64,000 bases of DNA, from NCBI GenBank assembly GCA_000708835.1, contig DF237014.1:185148-249147 (forward strand), written 5' to 3'. Positions 6,294-61,340 of the stretch are shown here, piece after piece. The translations under genes and the position numbers were made by a program. Source of the stretch: Klebsormidium nitens (taxonomy: Eukaryota; Plantae; Klebsormidiophyceae). Below the pieces are notes generated by a model, which saw only the letters and a program-made list of their open reading frames with translations, made no database searches and was not told the origin of the DNA. Numbering within the stretch: the first letter of the stretch is position 1; each line of letters starts with the position of its first letter.

Positions 6294-9200
6294 ATGGCGC
6301 CCCCCTTGGGTGCCTCTTCCTTTTGGCGTGCTCTGATCCCCAGCCAGAAGCTGATGGCGGGGATCGTGATCGGGTGGGTCACGATGTTCCTGGTGGGCGC
6401 CCACCTCAGCGATGGGCTGACGTCAGGACGCGAGCAGCTGGGCCGCACGAGGACGTTTGAGGAGGCCACCACCAGGGGCCTAGGGCAGCTGCAGAAAGAA
6501 GGGGGAGGGGGCCAGCAGGGCCGCAAACTGAGGAGCGGGGAGACGGGCGGAGCGGGGGCGCAGGTGGAGGACCCGTGGGCCCCGGAACGGCGCGAGACGG
6601 AACGGCTGCTGTGGAATGCCACCATCCTGGTGGGCATGGCGGCCTTCAGGGACCCCGAGTGCCAGGTATGCGCCTGCCCCGGCCCCACCCCCAGTAAGGA
6701 GCTTGAGCAAAAACAGGGGGTGAAGTTGCACATGAGCTCCACTACTCTTCAAAACGCAAGCTCGTATGGGGCATTGTGCCCCAATTGAACGTGATCAATC
6801 TTAGAAAAACCCATCGCATCTGGATTGCCCGAGCCTGGCTGAGGGCTTGGCTGTGGTTTGCAGGACTCTGTGTGGTTGGCCCTGGCCAATGCTGCCAACA
6901 TCGACCGGGTCTCTATCGCAGTCTACCAGCAGAATGCGCCAGACGACCCCGACTGCTTGCAGTGGGCCAAGCTCATGTGTCCCCCCCAGGTAGGTCGCCA
7001 GCGGCTGAGTGCACTCCCTCTGGCCAGCTGGCTGCCTTGCCGCTGGTGAACGCGCCTGACGGAGCAGGGGGACGCCGGGGAGGGTGCGTCAAAAAAGTAC
7101 AGGACAACTGTGAGCTTTATGCAGCTTGTGGCCCATTTCGTGAGCCCTCGAAGAAACTCAGAGATTTATAATGGCCTCACAAGATCCACTGTGTGCATTG
7201 CCCGCTCGCCAACTTCTCACTTGACCTCGTCAACTCTGGCATTGAGGGGGTCGTGATGTGACCATCAAATGTCAAGCTGACTCTCAAGTCGGACAACAGG
7301 ATGGTGCTCTGGCGCTGCTGCTTTTCTTGCATCTAGTTACTGCTGTCTTCCCGCCCCGCAGGATGCTGTTGCCATTGGCAAAACCCCCGAGGAGGAGCGC
7401 CGGCGGCGGCCCAGCTTTGCGGCGGGCCCTGCAGACCTGACGCGCGTGTGCGCTGCGCTGCCGCGGGTGCGCGTGCAGCGAGTGGACGCGTTCAAGGACG
7501 GCCAGGGGCCCACCGTGGGGCGCTACCACATGCAGCAGATGCTCCAGGACGAGGACTTCTTCTTCCAGGTGACACCCCGTTTTAACCCCCTCCCCGGATA
7601 AGACTATCTGGGGCCCCTCCTCAGATGCTTTCTTTGAACCGACTCTGACGAAGGGTACAGATCTCCCTACCCTGCGGTGCAAAACCCGCTTTCCAAGCCC
7701 CCGTCCATCCCGCTCGTGGCGAGTCGTCAAGATTGACTGGTGTTCAGACTACCAAGACACGCGTTGCCTTATGCGAACAGCCATGAAACCCCCTTCCGGC
7801 TCGGAGGAATCGGCATCCGGTCGAGTCTGATGCTGCCGCGGCGTGGGTGTTCTGCAGGTGGACAGTCACAGCCACTTCATCTACGGCTGGGACGTGGAGA
7901 TCATGCGCAACTGGCGCCTCACAGGCAACCCGAACGCTGTCATCACTACTTACCCCGTGCCGCACGACCGCATCCCTGGCTGGCTCAAGCACCCCCCGGT
8001 AAGACTATCGATGAGGGGACCGATGCCACGGGCTGAATCAGCCGATGAGTGTGAATCGAGGTGACAAATACGGTACGCTGGTCATATGCAGTTAAAGTAT
8101 TGATTGTATGTAAGTGTTGTAGTCAAAGGCAATGAAAGTATTGCTTGCTTATTAGTCAAATCCTAATAGAGGTCCGAAAAGTTGTGGCCGTTTTTTGTTC
8201 CGGGCTGGTCGTCTGTGCATGTCTTTTGGTTTGACGTCTTGCGTCGGTGCAGATCCCGCGGCCCCCGTCCAGCCTGCCGTACCCCCGGGTGGTGGTGGAC
8301 TCTGTGACCGGGTTTGAGTACCTGCGGGTGAAGCGCGAGCTGCCCAGCGTGCCCGGCTTCGAGCTGGAGTACCTGCCCAGCATGGTGCCCATCATCTGCC
8401 ACGTGTCCTTCACCAACATGGCAGGGAACATGCCGCGGTGAGCTGCCACCCCAGCCCGGGACTATCCCCCCCTATGTCGTCTCGACCTGGAGACCTCCCA
8501 CTGGGCGTTTGTTCCAGTGCTTCTTAACATCTGTTGACTGAGCACTTATATTTGCGGTCTTACTAGTGTTCAAGCAATGTTGGGGTCTCCATCCGAGTTG
8601 GCAGCAAGCTCGACTTCAGTGGCCGTGCAAGGCTTGAACTCGGGGACAGCCTTCTTGGCGCCTAAGATACACATAAATCAACCGATCGAGTAGCCAACAT
8701 GGGGGGATATGATCGTGCACCCGCCAACCAGCCTTATTTCTTGTTCTGCGCGATTCCAGTCCGCCCTGCATGTGACGCCAGATTTCCTGTTTAGGGAAGC
8801 TAGTTGGCGGTCAGGGGCATGAGAACCGGGCCAGACCTATATGGCACATACGTTACAAGGAGTTCGAGACATGTCGACAGTCCGATGTTTACGCCTCTGG
8901 GCCCGGCGGTGCAGGATGGAGGCTGCGGGGTACTTGCGCATCCAGCAGGGGCAGCCCATCCGCACGCCCTTCTGGGCGGCGGGCCTGGCCTTCTCCACCG
9001 CGGCCGCGGTGCGCGAGGTGCCGTACGACCGCTACACGCCGTACCTCTTCGACGGGGAGGAGATCTCGACGGCGGCGCGGCTGTGGACGCACGGCTACGA
9101 CTTCTACGCGCCCATCACGGACACCGTCTTCCACGTCTACGAGTCCGCGTACAAGCGCAACAAGTACTGGGAGATTGACTGGCAGGAGCGCTCCGCCATC

Positions 9201-14000: not shown

Positions 14001-15941
14001 GTGCTGGTTGGAGGAAGTGGCGTACATGCATCACCACGGTAGGTATTCTTTCTGGCTGTTGCTTTCTTTGGCCTTGCGTTTCTCTTCGTCTCTTCCCTCT
14101 GCCTTCGTCTGTCGTCGACTCTTATTCAGCCTTGACTTGCGCGTTACCTTTCCATTGATATTGCATCCGCTTTTTGAAGCAAGGATCCTTGTTGACGAAA
14201 GTGCAGTCCTTTCGAACGCTAGGGGAGTATTTTGCAGAGGTTGGGATGAGAGAAGCGTGTACCTCTTACAGTCAGGCCGCCAACTCGATCATGAGCACCA
14301 AGTACTGCGCTAGGTCTTCTAAGGAAGCTCATGACACCTGTACTCGACCGTTCTGACAGATTTGACAGACCGTTTTGACACAATGGCAACGAAAAAGCGG
14401 CTTTAGTTGGACTTGCTCAAATCTGGTCAGAATAGACGGTAATAACATGAAAAAGTCCCGGCTCTTCGTAATTCCACGCCAAGCCCACGCACTTCTTTTC
14501 TTTGACTTTTGCAGCCTATTAGAGGAGATTTGGAGTCTAAACCTAGCCGGAATCTAGTAGCCTAGGCTAGCTAGGCTAGTCTAACCCCCCGTAGAAGTCA
14601 ATCGATGGGCGAGGAGAAGAAAGTCACGATGAGACGTTTTGAGAGTAATTTGAGATACGCCTAAGTGGGTTCCACAGAGGGTATATAAGTTGTGGTGGGG
14701 TTCTTTGTAGATGCGAGCTCCTGAGAAATGTAGGTACTCGGGACCTATTTCGACGACTTTCTATGCACGGCGGGGACGGCGGCAAGGACCGGACCGTCCC
14801 GTGTATGTCATGTGTGTCACATGTAACAATTGCGCCATATCTAGTTACCGCGTTGACCAACCGGCCGCAAACCGTGCCTCAACCAATCATGGCTGGCAGC
14901 CAACCATACCTAATCTACCTGGGATCATCGATTGGATACTGAACTTCGCCTACGGATCGCCGGGGAGCAAGGTTGCCGGGAGCGCGGAACGAAGTACCGA
15001 GATCAGCTACCGGGTAGCCGGGTAGCTTTTGGACGGGGTATAGTGGTCGGCTAGCTTTCAATAGAGTCTACCGGGAATTCTACCGGGTCAAACTTGTACC
15101 AACTGGTAAATTCCGGTAGGTAACTAATGTCGTCATACTGGCGACATCTGTGTTCACTTAAGCTTGTGTTCACAAGTATCCGCCCGGGGCGAAACAAACT
15201 AAAAACTCAAAACTAAAAGGATTAGACGCTCCACACCCGTACCCACCCTAACCCCCAAACCAACCCCACCCGTCCCCGGGACCTTCGAACACGGCCCTAT
15301 TATTGGCAATCAAGTTTCAAGACTACCGGTAGCTAGGGTGGACGGTCCCCTTGCCCATGCATGGGGAGTTCTGGGCCCCTGAGCTTCACTTTCTGCTTGC
15401 ATGGAGTTGGACAATGGAGTTGGAGCCTGGAGGGTTTTGCTTCGTAAATGTTAGAACTGAGAACCTCTCCATCATTACAGCGTTCCTGCAGAATGCCATC
15501 GGTGGGATGACAGGACCTTGAAATTTGGACGAGGGCGCCAAGCTCAGGGACCGCTAGGCTGTCCACTGCTTGGAACGCAAGGAGATGCATTGGCCTCACT
15601 GATCTGCGTTCACACGTAAGTGCCCCATGTGATATTTTCTCTACAGCTCGCGGTCTGTTCAACCTCATTCCTGGGCCATGGTGTTTGATTGAACGGCCTT
15701 GGTTGATGCCTAGGCGTGTTGCAGCACCACTTAAGATGATTGTATCAGAAGCATTTGACCATTGAAGAGGAAAATGGTAAACTCCTGCTGACAAGCTCAT
15801 GTAAGGTCATTGTGGTCTTACTGTGCATGACGGTGTAATGCCGACTTGGATGGAGGCTGGGACACACAAAACTACTTGGAAGGACCATGTTGCTTGAGTT
15901 GGAGGCTTATTCTATTATTATTGCCCTTTTTAGGTGTCACC

Positions 15942-18405
15942 ATGGCCCCCATATTGGCTAGAACCCTGCGGGGTTTTATCCCAATATTGGGGATCCTGTG
16001 TGGATGGGGGCTTCTGGGCAGAGTATGGTCCGCAACCATAGAGGAGATCGACTCTCTTCTTCAGGGCCCACTCTGGAACCAAACGAGCATTACGATCAGA
16101 GGCGGCAGGTTATCTGGTCAAATCCCCCCAGAGCTCGGCAACTTGATAAATCTCACCATGATCGACCTCTCCTACAACAACCTCTCCGGCCCCATTCCGC
16201 CAGAGTTCGGCAACCTGATCAGCCTTGCTTCTCTCAACCTTTCCTACAACGAACTTTCCGGTACCATCCCCCCAGAGCTTGGCAAGTCTTACACCCTTTC
16301 TCACCTTGACTTTTCCGATAACAACCTCTATGGTACCATTCCATCAGAGCTAGGCAGCCTGAAAAACTTAACCTACCTCAATCTTGGAGACAACACTCTT
16401 TCGGGTTCCATACCTGCTGTCTTGAGCAGACTCACCAGTCTGACTACTCTCCGTCTGTACAACAACGCCCTCTCTGGCCCCATCCCCCCTGAGCTCGGCA
16501 ACCTGACCAACCTCACCAGACTTTCTCTCCCTGATAATAGACTCTCAGGCTCCATACCCCCCGCGCTGAGTAAGCTGGTCAATCTCAACCACCTCTACCT
16601 CTACAACAACCGCCTCTCCGGGCTCATCCCCCCCGCGCTCAGTAGCCTGTCCAATCTCAGCGGCCTTGATCTTTCCCTCAACCGCCTCTCCGGCCCCATC
16701 CCCCCCGAGCTCGGCAGCATGACCGGACTCACCGGCCTCGCCCTCTCCTCTAACAACCTCTCCGGCCCCATCCCCCCCGAACTCGGTACCCTGCCTAACC
16801 TCACCGTCCTCTACCTCTACAACAACCGCCTCTCCGGCCCCATCCCCTCTGAGCTCGGCAACCTGACCGAACTCACCGACCTCTCCCTCTCCCGCAACGA
16901 CCTCTCCGGCCCAATCCCCTCCAAGCTCGGTAGCCTGCTCAATCTCACCGACCTCTCCCTCTCCTTCAACNNNNNNNNNNNNNNNNNNNNNNNNNNNNNN
17001 NNNNNNNNNNNNNNNNNNNNNNNNNNNNNNNNNNNNNNNNNNNNNNNNNNNNNNNNNNNNNNNNNNNNNNNNNNNNNNNNNNNNNNNNCCGTTCGTCCTC
17101 CACGGACTAGGGGCCAGATTGGTCGTCGCGAGCACGGCGTAGAAAGGTGTGCTTGAGTCGGATATCGGTGTTCCTCTCGGGGGACATTCCCTTCCCGCTG
17201 TACAGGGCAAACGAGTTTCTGGGCGTTCTCAGTAACGCGCACGGGAACTACACCTTGGCGGACCCGGACTTCGTGGACATGATCGACCTGGGGCGCGAGG
17301 GGAGGGCGTACACGGGGGTCGGGTTTTCGAGGGTCCAGGCGGGCAATCTCTGCGGCAACCCCGAGGCGAAGGCGGTCACGGCGCTCGTCTTTGGGGTATT
17401 CGCCGTCCTCTTGCTGGTGGGGACCATTTCCGTCGTCGTGGTGGCCCGCTGGCGCCGTCGAAACCGGGGTGGTGGTCTCGAGACGGTAGATGGGAGCCGC
17501 CTTGGGTAAGTCGTTTGGGTGGTGGCTGGAGATCGAACACGTCTCTCCTCTTGCCCGACTTCCAAGACTTCAACAATCTGGTGATCTCTGGCACACCACA
17601 ATATCATTTTTAATGTTAGAAAGGGATTCATAATCTGTGCGCTCACGTGCGCAGCTTCAATCGTTGGGCGCTCTACCTTTGGGGAGCTGCATTGGGCGTT
17701 CTACCCGTGGTGGACGTTGTCACCGACCTCCTGGTGCTGAGCGAGGTTTGGGGGGCGTGGCCAATGTGGGTGGTGTTGGCGTCGGTCTGTGCGCCGTTCG
17801 TTTGGGGGTCTTACGCGGTGGCTAAGGCTTGGTCGTCGACCGTGAGTCCAGTGCGCGGGTTGAAGGGTTTGCGGGCGAGATGGCTGTGGCCCCTGCCAAC
17901 TCTGGACGATTGGCAGCCGAGGACCTCGGACGGGTGGTCCCCGCGCGCCGAGGTTTGGGCGATCCTACTGCTGCCCCTGGGCCTCTTGGGCGTGCTCGTC
18001 CAGGACCTGCTGTCCGTGGCGGAGAGGTTCGGGCTTCATCTGGCGACCGGGGACCAGATTGTCGTGTTCGAGCACTATCACGAGTCCCGGGTGTTGGTCG
18101 AGCTGCTTCTAGAGTCGCTGCCCCAGGCGCTGTTCCAGACCGGACTGTACATAGTAGGGAGCTCGAGGGCGACCCGCATCTACATCGACCAGCGCATTTT
18201 CGTGCAGTCCATCGTGGTATCGTTGTGTAGTCTGTCGGTGCAGTACTGCACTATGCTCTGGGAGGCGGTGTACGAGGGCAGGTCGCTGGTCAAGGTGTTC
18301 CGGGACCGTTTCGAGAGCGCGGGGCAGCCGAGTCTCGTGACGGTATCCACCGCGGCGAGCGAGGATGAAGAAGTGGAGGGGTTGAGTCAAAAGGTGGCCA
18401 GTTGA
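15942..18405 (+). CDS. LRR receptor-like protein: signal peptide, >=12 plant-type 24-aa LRRs, TM helix, then an XK-related-like multi-TM domain
   Basis: Signal-peptide-like start MAPILARTLRGFIPILGILCGWGLLGRVWSA at 15942, with LxxLxxLxLxxNxLSGxIPxELGx repeats up to the gap. After the gap: an 'NLCGNP' cap, TM 'VTALVFGVFAVLLLVGTISVVVVA' and RWRRR. A phase-2 intron 17506-17654 (GTAAG...GCGCAG) joins gg|c in frame to the 17647-18405 ORF, which carries 'DVVTD' and 'ELLLESLPQALFQ'. Continuity across the gap at 16971-17088 is not proven. Confidence 0.75.
16104..16970 (+). repeat. Coding tandem array of 72-bp LRR units (12 visible units)
   Basis: 867 bp equals 12 x 72 + 3 with no indels. The 3' units share near-identical 'cgcctctccggccccatcccccccgagctcggc'. 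Confidence 0.9.
16971..17088. other. Assembly gap inside the LRR gene
   Basis: Run of N. Confidence 1.
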
Positions 18406-19231
18406 AGAAAGTTCTAAGGACCGAGCAGACGTTGAGACAAAGATGGATTGCGAGTGTAATTTGAATAGCTTGCATATATCTAGCGCCACTAGCTTGAAGT
18501 CGTAGCTACGAGTCTACACACCACGTGGCCAAACACATGGCGACGTCTTTGTATGGCATCCTCAATAGTTGTTTTTTCCCGAGCTCCATATACGAGTTTC
18601 TTCCGTGAAGGGTCGGGTATGATCTTGACCAGCCAATTTAAGGAGAGCCATATTTCTCATTTTACTTTCATGCATGATTGAATATTCCTTTTTCTCAGGT
18701 ACACTTCGGTTGGTTGATTGTAGGCCTGCCCTCGTAAGGATGTGTGCGCGGATTGATCAATCAACATTGTCATGCGCGCAAGATCGAGTCCTGATTGAGT
18801 CAAGGCCGCTGCAAACAAGCCATGCTGTCCAACAATGCAACGGTATAAACAAACGTGATCAGGAATGTCTGCAAACATATGCACCAGATGTCAAGCTTCT
18901 ATGTGACGCGTTGCGCGGCCTCCAGATATGCTTGCAGTTACGTATGTTGTCGTAATTGCACCCTAAAAAGACGACGTACAATCCTTTTCCAAGTCAGTCC
19001 ATCTCCACATGGTTCATGCACGTACCTAAACCACATCAACGTGCATGAAGACTTAAAAGTTTTTCTTCGCATCTTAAGTGACTGTACCTGCACAAGCTTT
19101 TCGATTATGTAGAATGATCCTAGACCTTCTCCCCTATTTACGTATGACTTCGTGCTAACATGCGTCTTTTGGAGGTCGTGATGCGGCCAAACCTTTGGCA
19201 GACCACACTCGTTGACGAGATGCTGATACCT

Positions 19232-22200: not shown

Positions 22201-25200
22201 GATCGCCGGGAAGTACAACATGTCACGAGACGTATGAATGTTGCAGTTGCATTCACACCCGATTACTCTTTCTGCTCTGCTCGCAACGTCGCCAAGAAGA
22301 GAGCCAGAGAGCCAGAGCCGGAGAGCCAGAGAGGTTCAAGAGGCAAATTACCCGAGCCCTGCAGTCTGTGGCAGCAAACCAGCGCCACTCTTTCTCATCA
22401 TTCCTCCCTAGCTAATGCAAATCTGGGGGGCCCCCCACCTGGATGGCCCACCCCCGCACAAGCGACGCCCCGCACAACGTGCTGGCGGCCGCGGCCTGCT
22501 CGTCCACGTCGGTCCCCGCCACGGCGATGTGGTACACGCGCTCCAGCTGGTCCTGCCGGCTGGCCGGGCTCGCCAGGATGGCGGCGCGCAGGGACGCTGT
22601 CAGGGGCGCTCCCGCCATCAGCTGCTCCCAGGGGCCCTTGCCCGACCTCCAGCGGCCGGGGGGGGGCTCCGCGGGAGGGGGATCAACAGGATCCGTCTCG
22701 GAGGGGGGCAATAAGTTACGCGCAGTGCAGACGTCGACGATGAGGTCGCGCAAGCTCCCGGCATTGTCCGAAGAAGTGGAGGACTCTGGAGGGGTAGCAC
22801 CAGGAGGGTTGCTGTGAAAACCGACGGCGGGGCTGGGGAGGGGGGACATAGCGCCCAGAGCGGAGCCTGCGCGTGGGCTGGGAGGAGGGACTCCCATGAG
22901 GGATGGGGAGAGGCGGGCTGCGGCGGCCGAGGCTGCGGGCGGCGGGGGCAGCAGGAGGGGGAATTGGTGCAACAGGTCGAGCGAGGCCACGAGGTCCTGC
23001 TGGCTGGCGGCGNNNNNNNNNNNNNNNNNNNNNNNNNNNNNNNNNNNNNNNNNNNNNNNNNNNNNNNNNNNNNNNNNNNNNNNNNNNNNNNNNNNNNNNN
23101 NNNNNNNNNNNNNNNNNNNNNNNNNNNNNNNNNNNNNNNNNNNNNNNNNNNNNNNNNNNNNNNNNNNNNNNNNNNNNNNNNNNNNNNNNNNNNNNNNNNN
23201 NNNNNNNNNNNNNNNNNNNNNNNNNNNNNNNNNNNNNNNNNNNNNNNNNNNNNNNNNNNNNNNNNNNNNNNNNNNNNNNNNNNNNNNNNNNNNNNNNNNN
23301 NNNNNNNNNNNNNNNNNNNNNNNNNNNNNNNNNNNNNNNNNNNNNNNNNNNNNNNNNNNNNNNNNNNNNNNNNNNNNNNNNNNNNNNNNNNNNNNNNNNN
23401 NNNNNNNNNNNNNNNNNNNNNNNNNNNNNNNNNNNNNNNNNNNNNNNNNNNNNNNNNNNNNNNNNNNNNNNNNNNNNNNNNNNNNNNNNNNNNNNNNNNN
23501 NNNNNNNNNNNNNNNNNNNNNNNNNNNNNNNNNNNNNNNNNNNNNNNNNNNNNNNNNNNNNNNNNNNNNNNNNNNNNNNNNNNNNNNNNNNNNNNNNNNN
23601 NNNNNNNNNNNNNNNNNNNNNNGGTCCGTGGCGTGGGCGTGGCGGGCGGTCGAGGAGGGAGGGGGGGGCGGCGGGGCCTCAGGGGGGGGGCTGTCAGACA
23701 TGGAGTCGACCAGGAAAGCTGCTGCGGGGTCTAATGCCGGGGCAGCAGGAGCGGGGGGTGCCGAAACGGCCTGAATGGCCATGGGGACGACAGCGAGAAG
23801 CAGGCTCAAACGGGTCTCAGTGTGGAATGGCTCCTCGTGACCCTGCGCGACAAAGGACGAAACGCATTTCAAAGGGGTGACAGGGCAGGCCTGTGGGGTA
23901 CACAAGGCTGCAAGGGAGCCCCCCTGAGTGCAGGGGGCTGAGCGCTGGACAGAGTCAGCGGGGAGTGAAGCAGGCCGCCGAGCGAGGCAGGCCTTGGGGC
24001 TCACCCTTTGCACTGAGCGCAGCGCCGCCAGCCAGAGAGCGAGGAGAGTATCCAGCCAGGAGGCTCCTTCCACGCTGCGCACCACACGAAGCAGCCCTGC
24101 AACCGCGGCAGCTCAAAAGTCAAAAGAGGCAGCCGGCATACTGCACGGAGCCATAAGCAAATGTCATGCAAGCTAAGAAGCTGATTGCGTAAAACCAAGT
24201 GTGGAAGAAAATTGCCAACATTAGCCAAGCTGCTGGCTTGATCCAATTCCACCCTGGACATAAAGGCGCGATTGTCGTCTCCGCACGCCCCCACTTTCCT
24301 CACCAGCCAGTGCGTCGGCCGTGGTTGTGGGTGGCAGCCTCTTCCCCTCCACGCAGTCCTCCAGCATGATTTCCAGCGGCAGCCACGCCTTGGCGGCCCC
24401 CACTGTCCAGGGCCGCCACCCGTCGTGCGCCGCCTGCATGGCCACCACCATGCCGCACACCGCAGACGGGGGGGACTGCACCGTGCCCCACGCCGCCAGC
24501 ACTGTGTCTGCCAGCTGCTTCTCCTCCCAGGGCAGGCCCGCCGATGACGGGGCCAGCCGCTCAAGCGCACCGCTCAGCTGGGCCCAAGCAGGGGGGCTGT
24601 ACAACACAACGAGGAGAGGGGACGATGACATGGTGAACGACCATGCCTGGCTGCCAAAAACTTGAGCGACTCCAGCTTGACAATGTGGCTAGGTCTTCCA
24701 TGTCAGGTGGCCCTCTTTGAGTTTTAACATGAATGTGACCAATCGAAGAGGAGACCATTGGGAGTGGATCAAACATATGCATGCCAATGTGTGCCCTTCC
24801 ATCGGGGCAACTCCTGCCCTGCCCCCACTCACGAAAAGCTCCGTGCTTTTCACCTGACTTTCCGCGCCATTCTTAAAAGGCCCCCTGTCTTACGCCCCTC
24901 CAGCAGTGCGTGTAGCGTGCGCAGCGCCACTCGCACTATGTCGTGCTCTTCAGGCCCGCCGAGAAGCACCGCCTGCTGTTCGCCCCCGTCCCCCGGCAGC
25001 ACCCCCCCCAGCAGGAACGTGCATGCCGACACCAGGAAGTCTATCACCGAGGGCGGGTCGGTACCACCCTCCCTGGATGCTGGATTCGCTGCCTCTCTCC
25101 GGGCGCACGTTGCTGGCAAGAACTCCTCCAAGATGTGCAGGCAGGCTAGGAAGACCTGGGGCTTCTGTGCCTTCAACTCCGAGGCTCTGCAAGATGGAAT

Positions 25201-60702: not shown

Positions 60703-61340
60703 NNNNNNNNNNNNNNNNNNNNNNNNNNNNNNNNNNNNNNNNNNNNNNNNNNNNNNNNNNNNNNNNNNNNNNNNNNNNNNNNNNNNNNNNNNNNNNNNNN
60801 NNNNNNNNNNNNNNNNNNNNNNNNNNNNNNNNNNNNNNNNNNNNNNNNNNNNNNNNNNNNNNNNNNNNNNNNNNNNNNNNNNNNNNNNNNNNNNNNNNNN
60901 NNNNNNNNNNNNNNNNNNNNNNNNNNNNNNNNNNNNNNNNNNNNNNNNNNNNNNNNNNNNNNNNNNNNNNNNNNNNNNNNNNNNNNNNNNNNNNNNNNNN
61001 NNNNNNNNNNNNNNNNNNNNNNNNNNNNNNNNNNNNNNNNNNNNNNNNNNNNNNNNNNNNNNNNNNNNNNNNNNNNNNNNNNNNNNNNNNNNNNNNNNNN
61101 NNNNNNNNNNNNNNNNNNNNNNNNNNNNNNNNNNNNNNNNNNNNNNNNNNNNNNNNNNNNNNNNNNNNNNNNNNNNNNNNNNNNNNNNNNNNNNNNNNNN
61201 NNNNNNNNNNNNNNNNNNNNNNNNNNNNNNNNNNNNNNNNNNNNNNNNNNNNNNNNNNNNNNNNNNNNNNNNNNNNNNNNNNNNNNNNNNNNNNNNNNNN
61301 NNNNNNNNNNNNNNNNNNNNNNNNNNNNNNNNNNNNNNNA
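60703..61340. other. Assembly gap
   Basis: Run of N. Confidence 1.

Follow-up and report, generated by a model that had tools for sequence, protein, structure and literature searches.

The stretch of DNA analysed here (the window) comprises 64,000 nt of contig DF237014.1 of Klebsormidium nitens (positions 185,148-249,147, forward strand), a streptophyte alga according to a taxonomy look-up. All coordinates given below are window positions, and all features described lie on the forward strand. Positions 15942-18405 contain a single expressed gene for a receptor-like membrane protein, whose parts follow each other in the order signal peptide, twelve leucine-rich repeats (LRRs), an assembly gap with more LRRs, NLCGNP cap, transmembrane (TM) helix, RWRRR motif, intron and a multi-helix module of 249 residues. 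In predicted structures, this module displays the fold and the signature residues of the N-terminal repeat (ND, consisting of TM1, TM2, an inserted helix, TM3 and TM4) of XK-related (XKR) proteins, and it probably descends from this repeat. Taken as a whole, this explanation is one that we hold with good confidence. An earlier interpretation of the letters alone, hereafter the sequence-only reading, had proposed such a fusion of an LRR ectodomain to an XK-type module. The NCBI record for the locus holds a 'partial' protein of 368 amino acids (aa) only, and the protein encoded after the gap is 100% identical to 'hypothetical protein KFL_000650330, partial' of K. nitens.

Transcript contigs from four runs (X1, X2, X3 and X5) of two studies were aligned to the locus, and eight runs of one organism contain 36-65% of the words sampled from 17089-18600. 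The contigs of the four runs have zero depth within 17506-17654, upstream of 15934 and past 18588, and thus behave as transcript assemblies. In all four runs a contig skips exactly 17505/6-17653/4 with perfect flanks, as exemplified by an X1 contig that joins 17340-17504 (165 nt) to 17654-18186 (533 nt). The skipped segment is a phase-2 GT..AG intron (GG|C) of 149 nt, bordered by GG|GTAAGT at 17505/17506 and CAG|C at 17654/17655, and the homologues L001 and L002 share its position and phase. The exact junction of 17505 to 17655 is the one that the sequence-only reading had placed here. The scenario that it had named as fatal to its proposal, in which the LRR-TM part stops at 17509 and a separate gene follows, does not hold, as the transcripts join the LRR-TM exon to the last exon (17655-18405), which encodes 249 residues with further hydrophobic helices. 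Upstream of the coding region, contig matching begins at 15934, and the loose end of an X3 contig maps to 15586-15615, which represents the 3' end of a non-coding first exon (5' untranslated region, 5'UTR) and is directly followed by GTAAGT; the GT..AG intron between them occupies 15616-15933. The first ATG of the second exon lies at 15942, and the TTG at 15846, the upstream start of the mechanically called open reading frame (ORF), was rejected as a start codon because 15616-15933 is intron. The 5'UTR exon also carries an upstream ORF of five codons (ATG CAT TGG CCT CAC TGA, 15585-15602) just ahead of the 5'UTR intron. Downstream of the stop codon, the 3'UTR extends from 18406 to the limit of the contigs at 18588, with contig ends at 18557-18582 and no depth thereafter.

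The gene starts with an ATG and a signal-peptide-like N-terminus (MAPILARTLRGFIPILGILCGWGLLGRVWSA; 15942-16034), which was judged by inspection of the translation and is conserved in L002. It is followed by twelve plant-type LRRs of 24 residues at 16095-16970, which match Pfam LRR_1 (E 9.5e-43, 11 stretches) and LRR_8 (E 4.3e-27) and are detected by TRF as a 72-nt period at 16460-16964, until they are interrupted by the assembly gap. After the gap, the translation of 17109-17371 yields the end of the ectodomain with LSGDIP and the NLCGNP cap (17345-17362). The cap belongs to a block, GVGFxRVQxGNLCGNPEA, conserved in 17 family members. A single-pass TM helix (TM0; 17372-17446) with a Kyte-Doolittle peak of 2.87 comes next and is modelled as a helix with a predicted local distance difference test score (pLDDT) of ~95 in model 2 (see below). 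The remainder of the exon (17447-17505) encodes the RWRRR stop-transfer motif (17447-17461) and a cytosolic linker of ~15 residues. Translation, Pfam and hydropathy thus place the signal peptide, the twelve or more plant-type LRRs, the NLCGNP cap, the TM helix and RWRRR exactly where the sequence-only reading had seen them. Single LRR units within 16449-16876 are covered by contigs at depths of hundreds, with joints that go back and foreign letters in between. These deep contigs come from other, more highly expressed LRR genes with near-identical repeat units, so that depth in this interval is uninformative on the gene described here. A search with three parts of the protein (tblastn) found no second copy of the gene in the window, which contains two further assembly gaps (23013-23622 and 60703-61339).

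The assembly gap at 16971-17088 lies within the coding sequence and conceals additional LRRs and, probably, a portion of the juxtamembrane ectodomain region that is specific to the family. Contigs running through 16858-16965 (X1 rec3, X3 rec15) extend past 16965 into further LRR-like sequence, which indicates that the gap hides at least one more repeat. Directly after the gap the assembly is poorly polished (17089-17136): an X5 contig (rec22) covering 17109-17316 omits the assembly bases 17123, 17125, 17130 and 17136, which create stops in the true frame. With these four bases removed, the frame of the TM helix is open back to 17109 and reads GARLARSTRRKVCLSR... (fuller reading, GARLARSTRRKVCLSRISVFLSGDIP), matching GARLSRNTRRKVCLSR... 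inside an uninterrupted 880-aa ORF of L002. The latter is a gap-free close homologue on a metagenome contig, 85% identical in the last exon and with the same N-terminus, and its ORF encodes a signal peptide, ~28 LRRs, a region of ~200 aa, GARLSRNTRRKVCLSRISVFLSGDIP, NLCGNP, a TM helix and RWRRR before it terminates at an identical GG|GTAAGT, downstream of which lies the module exon. The layout and the phase-2 intron of L002 recur in a second homologue, L001. As L002 and L001 carry ectodomain, cap and TM helix in one ORF, the two sides of the gap represent one coding exon, and the gap hides repeats rather than a gene boundary. Continuity across the gap, although not read directly, is very well supported by this comparison. 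The public model KFL_000650330 circumvents the stops after the gap by means of a small intron (~17146-17207), which was rejected because transcript contigs run straight through 17109-17316. The ~200-residue, Cys-containing stretch between the regular LRRs and the NLCGNP cap (L002 4315-4902; L001 ~6300-6800) is conserved among family members and, in L002, matches no Pfam entry; its counterpart in the window is probably mostly concealed by the gap.

An exhaustive HMMER search with the 249-aa module retrieved 54 proteins at E<=1e-3. All of the ~20 long homologues scanned with Pfam combine N-terminal LRRs with the C-terminal module, and neither the C-terminal 249 aa nor the 20 paralogues scanned at full length gave a Pkinase match. 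Every match with an organism name belongs to Klebsormidium: K. nitens contributes at least 11 loci, and in a Trinity transcript of K. subtile a single ORF encodes LRRs and module. The search for paralogues of the same architecture that the sequence-only reading had suggested was thus successful. Over 17 members, the succession of cap, TM0, basic linker and module can be aligned. Two K. nitens paralogues, P0032 (GAQ78274.1) and P0047 (GAQ78170.1), are publicly named 'LRR receptor-like serine/threonine-protein kinase FLS2'; Pfam shows only LRRs in both, followed by the C-terminal module, and no kinase domain. The gene model of P0008 (KFL_010600020, K. nitens) adds two Sel1 repeats (Pfam E 5e-18) after the module, which may be a real extension of the tail or the product of a merged gene model. 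In addition, a divergent member on a 3790-nt contig of an SRA run (L003) encodes LRRs and module in one 533-aa ORF without an intron, so that the contig represents either a transcript or a gene lacking introns, and an ENA metagenome contig (L004) contains LRR ORFs upstream of a 25%-identical module. From these two contigs, the family may range beyond the named Klebsormidium species. P0062 (2202 aa, 10 matched stretches), a bacterial YDG-repeat protein that matches the low-complexity tail only, was rejected as spurious.

The module was modelled with AlphaFold2 both alone, from an alignment of 24 sequences (A1; model 1: pLDDT 81.4, predicted template modelling score 0.76), and together with TM0, from a different alignment of 17 sequences (model 2: pLDDT 79.8). 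Five helices are predicted, four of them membrane-spanning and one re-entrant, so that the multi-helix nature of the module stands, with one helix more than the "about 4" of the sequence-only reading. Helix 1 (17659-17745; residues 2-30 of the module) resembles XKR TM1 and carries D20 and D24 (D-x3-D), and helix 2 (17761-17838; residues 36-61) resembles TM2. The third, hydrophobic helix (17941-18027; residues 96-104 and 106-124) is kinked at P105 in model 1, contains the invariant D117 and resembles the re-entrant inserted helix IH1. It is followed by a hydrophilic, TM3-like helix (18070-18156; residues 139-167) with R145, E149, E153, P156, Q157 and Q161, which fell under the Kyte-Doolittle cut-off, and by a TM4-like helix (18190-18276; residues 179-207), where the structural alignments to XKR8 and XKR9 end. 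The XKR-like part of ~210 residues precedes a predicted cytosolic tail of ~45 residues with a short helix and an acidic end (18277-18405, including the stop codon at 18403-18405), in which pLDDT falls below 50 past residue 233. Altogether, ~270 residues with four more predicted membrane crossings follow TM0. The last exon contains the motifs D-V-V-T-D and E-L-L-L-E-S-L-P-Q, which the sequence-only reading had quoted as XK-type and which agree with the published descriptions of the family (PMC8298096, PMC12334663, PMC8500837).

As the LRRs lie outside and TM0 crosses the membrane once, both the start and the end of the module are predicted to be cytosolic. Model 1 also contains short strands at 72-76, 127-131, 134-137 and 226-229. 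Since strand 72-76 must pair with another strand, the loop after helix 2 would share its side of the membrane with the tail or with the loop after helix 3, and with either pairing one of helices 3-5 would not cross the membrane. One non-crossing helix agrees with the arrangement in XKRs, where the inserted element is the third helix. The highly conserved loop GSSRATRIYID, which connects the TM3-like to the TM4-like helix, is predicted to face outward, adjoining the conserved cap. Among 24 members, D117 is invariant and the other signature positions are widely conserved (D20 17/24, D24 19/24, R145 23/24, E149 as E or D 19/24, P156 22/24, Q157 21/24). Furthermore, comparison with L001 and L002 gives the module a ratio of nonsynonymous to synonymous substitution rates (Ka/Ks) of 0.22-0.31, by which measure it is under purifying selection. 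Position 153, three residues before the conserved Pro, is occupied by either E or R, a charge reversal within a membrane helix that divides the family into two groups.

Both models were compared with a set of 48,161 representative solved chains, and model 1 additionally with Foldseek's 200 candidates. In the full set, model 1 matched rXKR9 best (7p16, Z 8.8, 4.0 Å over 156 aligned residues), which was the sole chain with Z>=8, followed by hXkr4 on rank 2 (9boj, Z 7.4, 157 aligned) and hXKR8 on rank 6 (8xej, Z 6.7, 153 aligned, chain residues 7-182). Among the Foldseek candidates it aligned with 7p14 (Z 8.8, 155 aligned; model 4-210 to chain 4-196) and 7dce (Z 7.9, 160 aligned; model 2-205 to chain 7-195), the next chain reaching Z 5.5 over ~50 residues. 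With model 2, XKR9 (Z 9.8, 3.3 Å over 152 aligned; model 65-270 to chain 4-190), Xkr4 (Z 8.5, 148 aligned) and XKR8 (Z 7.7, 163 aligned) occupied ranks 1-3 of the 48,161 chains, ahead of the next chain at Z 7.0. All XKR alignments are colinear and confined to the N-terminal repeat (XKR residues ~4-196), those of model 2 with 14-16% identity over 148-163 residues. XKR9 consists of two related repeats, each comprising, besides four TM helices, one that is inserted in the inner leaflet (PMC8298096), and ND and the C-terminal repeat (CD) of hXkr4 are related via pseudo-two-fold symmetry (PMC12334663). The predicted models contain the repeat-unit fold of two splayed TM helices, an inserted inner-leaflet helix and two parallel TM helices. 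The two-repeat arrangement (ND and CD) with eight TM helices is not present, as the protein ends ~45 residues past the TM4-like helix, in line with the observation in the sequence-only reading that only about half of an Xkr protein is visible.

Independently of structure, XK-related (PF09815) is the only Pfam family matched by more than one of the 24 members. It was detected in P0050 (E 2e-4, 20.9 bits) and in the K. nitens proteins P0056 (E 2.8e-3, 17.1 bits) and P0047 (E 0.38, 10.1 bits), and the best E-value remains <0.01 after multiplication by the ~40 proteins scanned. The three matches are colinear and run from the start of the module up to profile positions 151-190, covering overall positions 2-190 of 337 and hence the first half of the family. 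Features of the ESM protein language model, which served as a lead only, gave the XK-related (PF09815) cluster a score of 0.89, and ESM Atlas clusters of 200-270 aa that include Mucoromycota, Foraminifera and Mollusca proteins scored 0.87-0.91. An acidic cluster on TM1 and TM3 is a hallmark of the XKR family, and TM3 of XKR9 is so hydrophilic that hydropathy overlooks it and is kinked at a conserved PQL (PMC8298096). By pattern, the module contains the acidic cluster (D20-x3-D24 on helix 1; R145 and E149-x3-E153 on helix 4) and the P-Q kink (-x2-P156-Q157), with a spacing that matches D26/D30 and E137/E141 of hXkr8 and E313/P316 of hXkr4 (PMC8500837, PMC12334663, PMC8298096). The residues essential for scrambling in hXkr8 (D26, D30, R/K134, E137, E141 and R183) all lie on ND helices (PMC8500837), and those of hXkr4 are D125, D129 and E313, with TM3 broken at P316 (PMC12334663).

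Several observations weigh against this assignment and against the continuity of the gene. The module encoded in the window has no Pfam match at E<=1, PF09815 included, and all family members stay below the gathering score of PF09815 (24.8 bits). A profile of the 24 sequences found no sequence in PDB at E<=10, PDB sequence searches with the window module, P0050 and P0057 returned no XKR, and word-indexed searches with the family profile and with the P0050 module (E<=10) yielded family members only and no bona fide XKR sequences. Foldseek returned nothing from PDB at E<=0.001 for model 1, and the ESM Atlas shape search produced only matches with TM<0.4 to unrelated families. Furthermore, according to the note accompanying the tool, Z<13 (including 8-10) can be due to chance for helical proteins and bundles, the motif equivalences to XKRs were drawn by pattern and spacing only, the CD repeat is absent from the algal module, and position 153 is E in 11/24 members and R in 10/24. 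The absence of sequence, profile and shape matches would suit a membrane domain of four or five helices that is specific to Klebsormidium and unrelated to XKR, and whose likeness would reflect convergence or generic helical-bundle packing. We consider such a domain improbable, since the three XKR chains listed rank at the top with two models (1-3 with model 2), give the longest alignments and coincide in the same half of the family as the sub-threshold HMM (hidden Markov model) matches, which makes chance unlikely; in addition, D-x3-D and E-x3-E-x2-P-Q lie on matching helices and the TM3-like helix is unusually hydrophilic, as in XKR9. The HMM support sought by the sequence-only reading is found in paralogues at sub-threshold scores and is missing from the window's own module, and the structural support lies in the ranking of chains. 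With respect to continuity, none of the contigs seen from this organism spans the gap at 16971-17088, and the linkage demanded by the sequence-only reading is based on the homologue L002 and on contigs entering the gap from both sides. The gap itself, the stops that the assembly as written contains in every frame soon after it, and the NCBI annotation of a partial protein only could also be accounted for by a mis-assembly or two separate genes, one for an LRR protein that stops within or close to the gap and one for an independent membrane protein beyond it. This is very improbable: the sequence after the gap has neither start nor signal peptide, and its beginning falls within an ectodomain block encoded by one ORF in L002 and L001, transcripts remove the frame problem, expressed contigs enter the gap from both sides, and the same architecture is found in >20 proteins.

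Plant-lineage cell-surface LRR receptors are known to signal via kinases or kinase partners, and ectodomain-driven association is their usual mode of activation. In the one-gene protein with an ND-like module favoured here, the LRR ectodomain lies outside and is followed by TM0 and then by the module in the place of a kinase. We hypothesize that ligand-driven pairing of ectodomains could unite two half-modules into an XKR-like eight-helix assembly, or that the acidic vestibule of TM1 and TM3 could be opened in another way, and that extracellular recognition would then lead directly to lipid scrambling or local membrane thinning rather than to phosphorylation. The hydrophilic path proposed for Xkr8 lies entirely within ND, and CD relates to ND by pseudo-symmetry in the same orientation, so that two half-modules could pair and mimic a full XKR. 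That the output of the module is scrambling or membrane thinning is possible but tentative. The fuller scheme of a ligand-assembled scramblase is more doubtful still; in it, ectodomain pairing would form a half-XKR dimer and recognition would cause loss of plasma-membrane lipid asymmetry or local thinning without a kinase and, by extension, the two-repeat XKRs of animals would descend from a four-helix half that was once dimeric. To our knowledge, phospholipid scrambling has been shown for XKR4, XKR8, XKR9 and CED-8 only. Several animal XKR members have no shown scrambling activity, and the function of many is 'still elusive' (PMC8298096), which leaves room for a true half-XKR relative that does not scramble and serves as a membrane scaffold or docking platform recruiting a cytosolic or membrane partner. 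The Sel1 repeats after the module of P0008 suggest protein-protein interactions at the tail, and about half of the members have Arg at the E153 position (10/24), as would suit such a scaffold; conversely, the residues essential for scrambling in Xkr8 are among the best conserved of the module, and a conserved, buried acidic cluster would be superfluous in a simple anchor. We judge a scaffold to be possible to about the same extent as scrambling or thinning. Oligomerised modules might instead form an ion-conducting pore or channel gated by the LRR ectodomain; the module contains a buried acidic cluster (D20, D24, D117, E149 and E153), and connexin and pannexin chains do occur among the weak structural matches (Z 5-6.6). 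As these chains are outranked by all XKR chains and align with a smaller part of the model, and no channel family appeared in the Pfam scans, a pore seems quite remote, less probable even than an unrelated domain.

If the favoured reading of an LRR receptor with an ND-like module is true, a family joining an LRR ectodomain to an XKR-type membrane module would represent a different output logic of receptors in a streptophyte alga, and the range of XKR-like domains would no longer be confined to animals. The natural occurrence of a single repeat bears on the origin of two-repeat scramblases and on the question of whether ND alone carries the scrambling path, as the mutagenesis of Xkr8 suggests. 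With ~210 residues and named candidate catalytic residues, the module is small enough to be tractable. For annotation, it is relevant that the gene is 'partial' in the public record and that two paralogues are mislabelled as FLS2 kinases.

With plant LRR receptor-like kinases (LRR-RLKs, e.g. of the FLS2 type) and receptor-like proteins (LRR-RLPs), the algal protein shares a signal peptide, plant-specific LRRs of 24 residues (LxxLxLxxNxLSGxIP), a basic stop-transfer motif and a single TM helix preceded by a cap that contains Cys. It differs from both in its juxtamembrane ectodomain region of ~200 residues without a Pfam match. Unlike in LRR-RLKs, a kinase domain is absent from the family, in which Pfam scans show only LRR families, and in contrast to LRR-RLPs the cytoplasmic side consists of a multi-pass membrane module (~270 residues after TM0) rather than a short tail.

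Compared with XK-related proteins (PF09815: XK, XKR4, XKR8, XKR9 and CED-8; structures 7DCE/8XEJ of hXKR8-basigin, 7P14/7P16 of rXKR9 and 9BOJ of hXkr4), the algal module shares the ND fold and the order of helices, a predicted cytosolic start, an acidic pair one turn apart on TM1 and a hydrophilic TM3 with E-x3-E-x2-P-Q that is missed by hydropathy prediction. In contrast, it contains only one of the two repeats and no CD, and hence lacks the inter-repeat C1 and C2 cavities within one chain; the protein scores under the Pfam threshold, adds an N-terminal TM helix linking a large LRR ectodomain and has no recognisable C-terminal plug of the caspase-regulated type. Its host is a streptophyte alga, whereas the XKR family has been called conserved 'from nematodes to humans' (PMC12334663). 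In the full-text literature, we found no paper that combines Klebsormidium with XK-related, or PF09815 with leucine-rich repeat. By analogy, the XKR8-basigin and XK-Kell complexes likewise combine an XKR-type membrane domain with one extra TM helix that bears a large extracellular domain. Basigin contacts the C-terminal repeat, where R284 of Xkr8 meets E230 of basigin (PMC8500837). The partners in these complexes are separate polypeptides, whereas the single-pass element of the algal protein is fused in cis, N-terminal to an ND-only module. What is new here is the domain architecture of an LRR ectodomain with an XKR-type module and the single-repeat XKR form, rather than a categorically new system.

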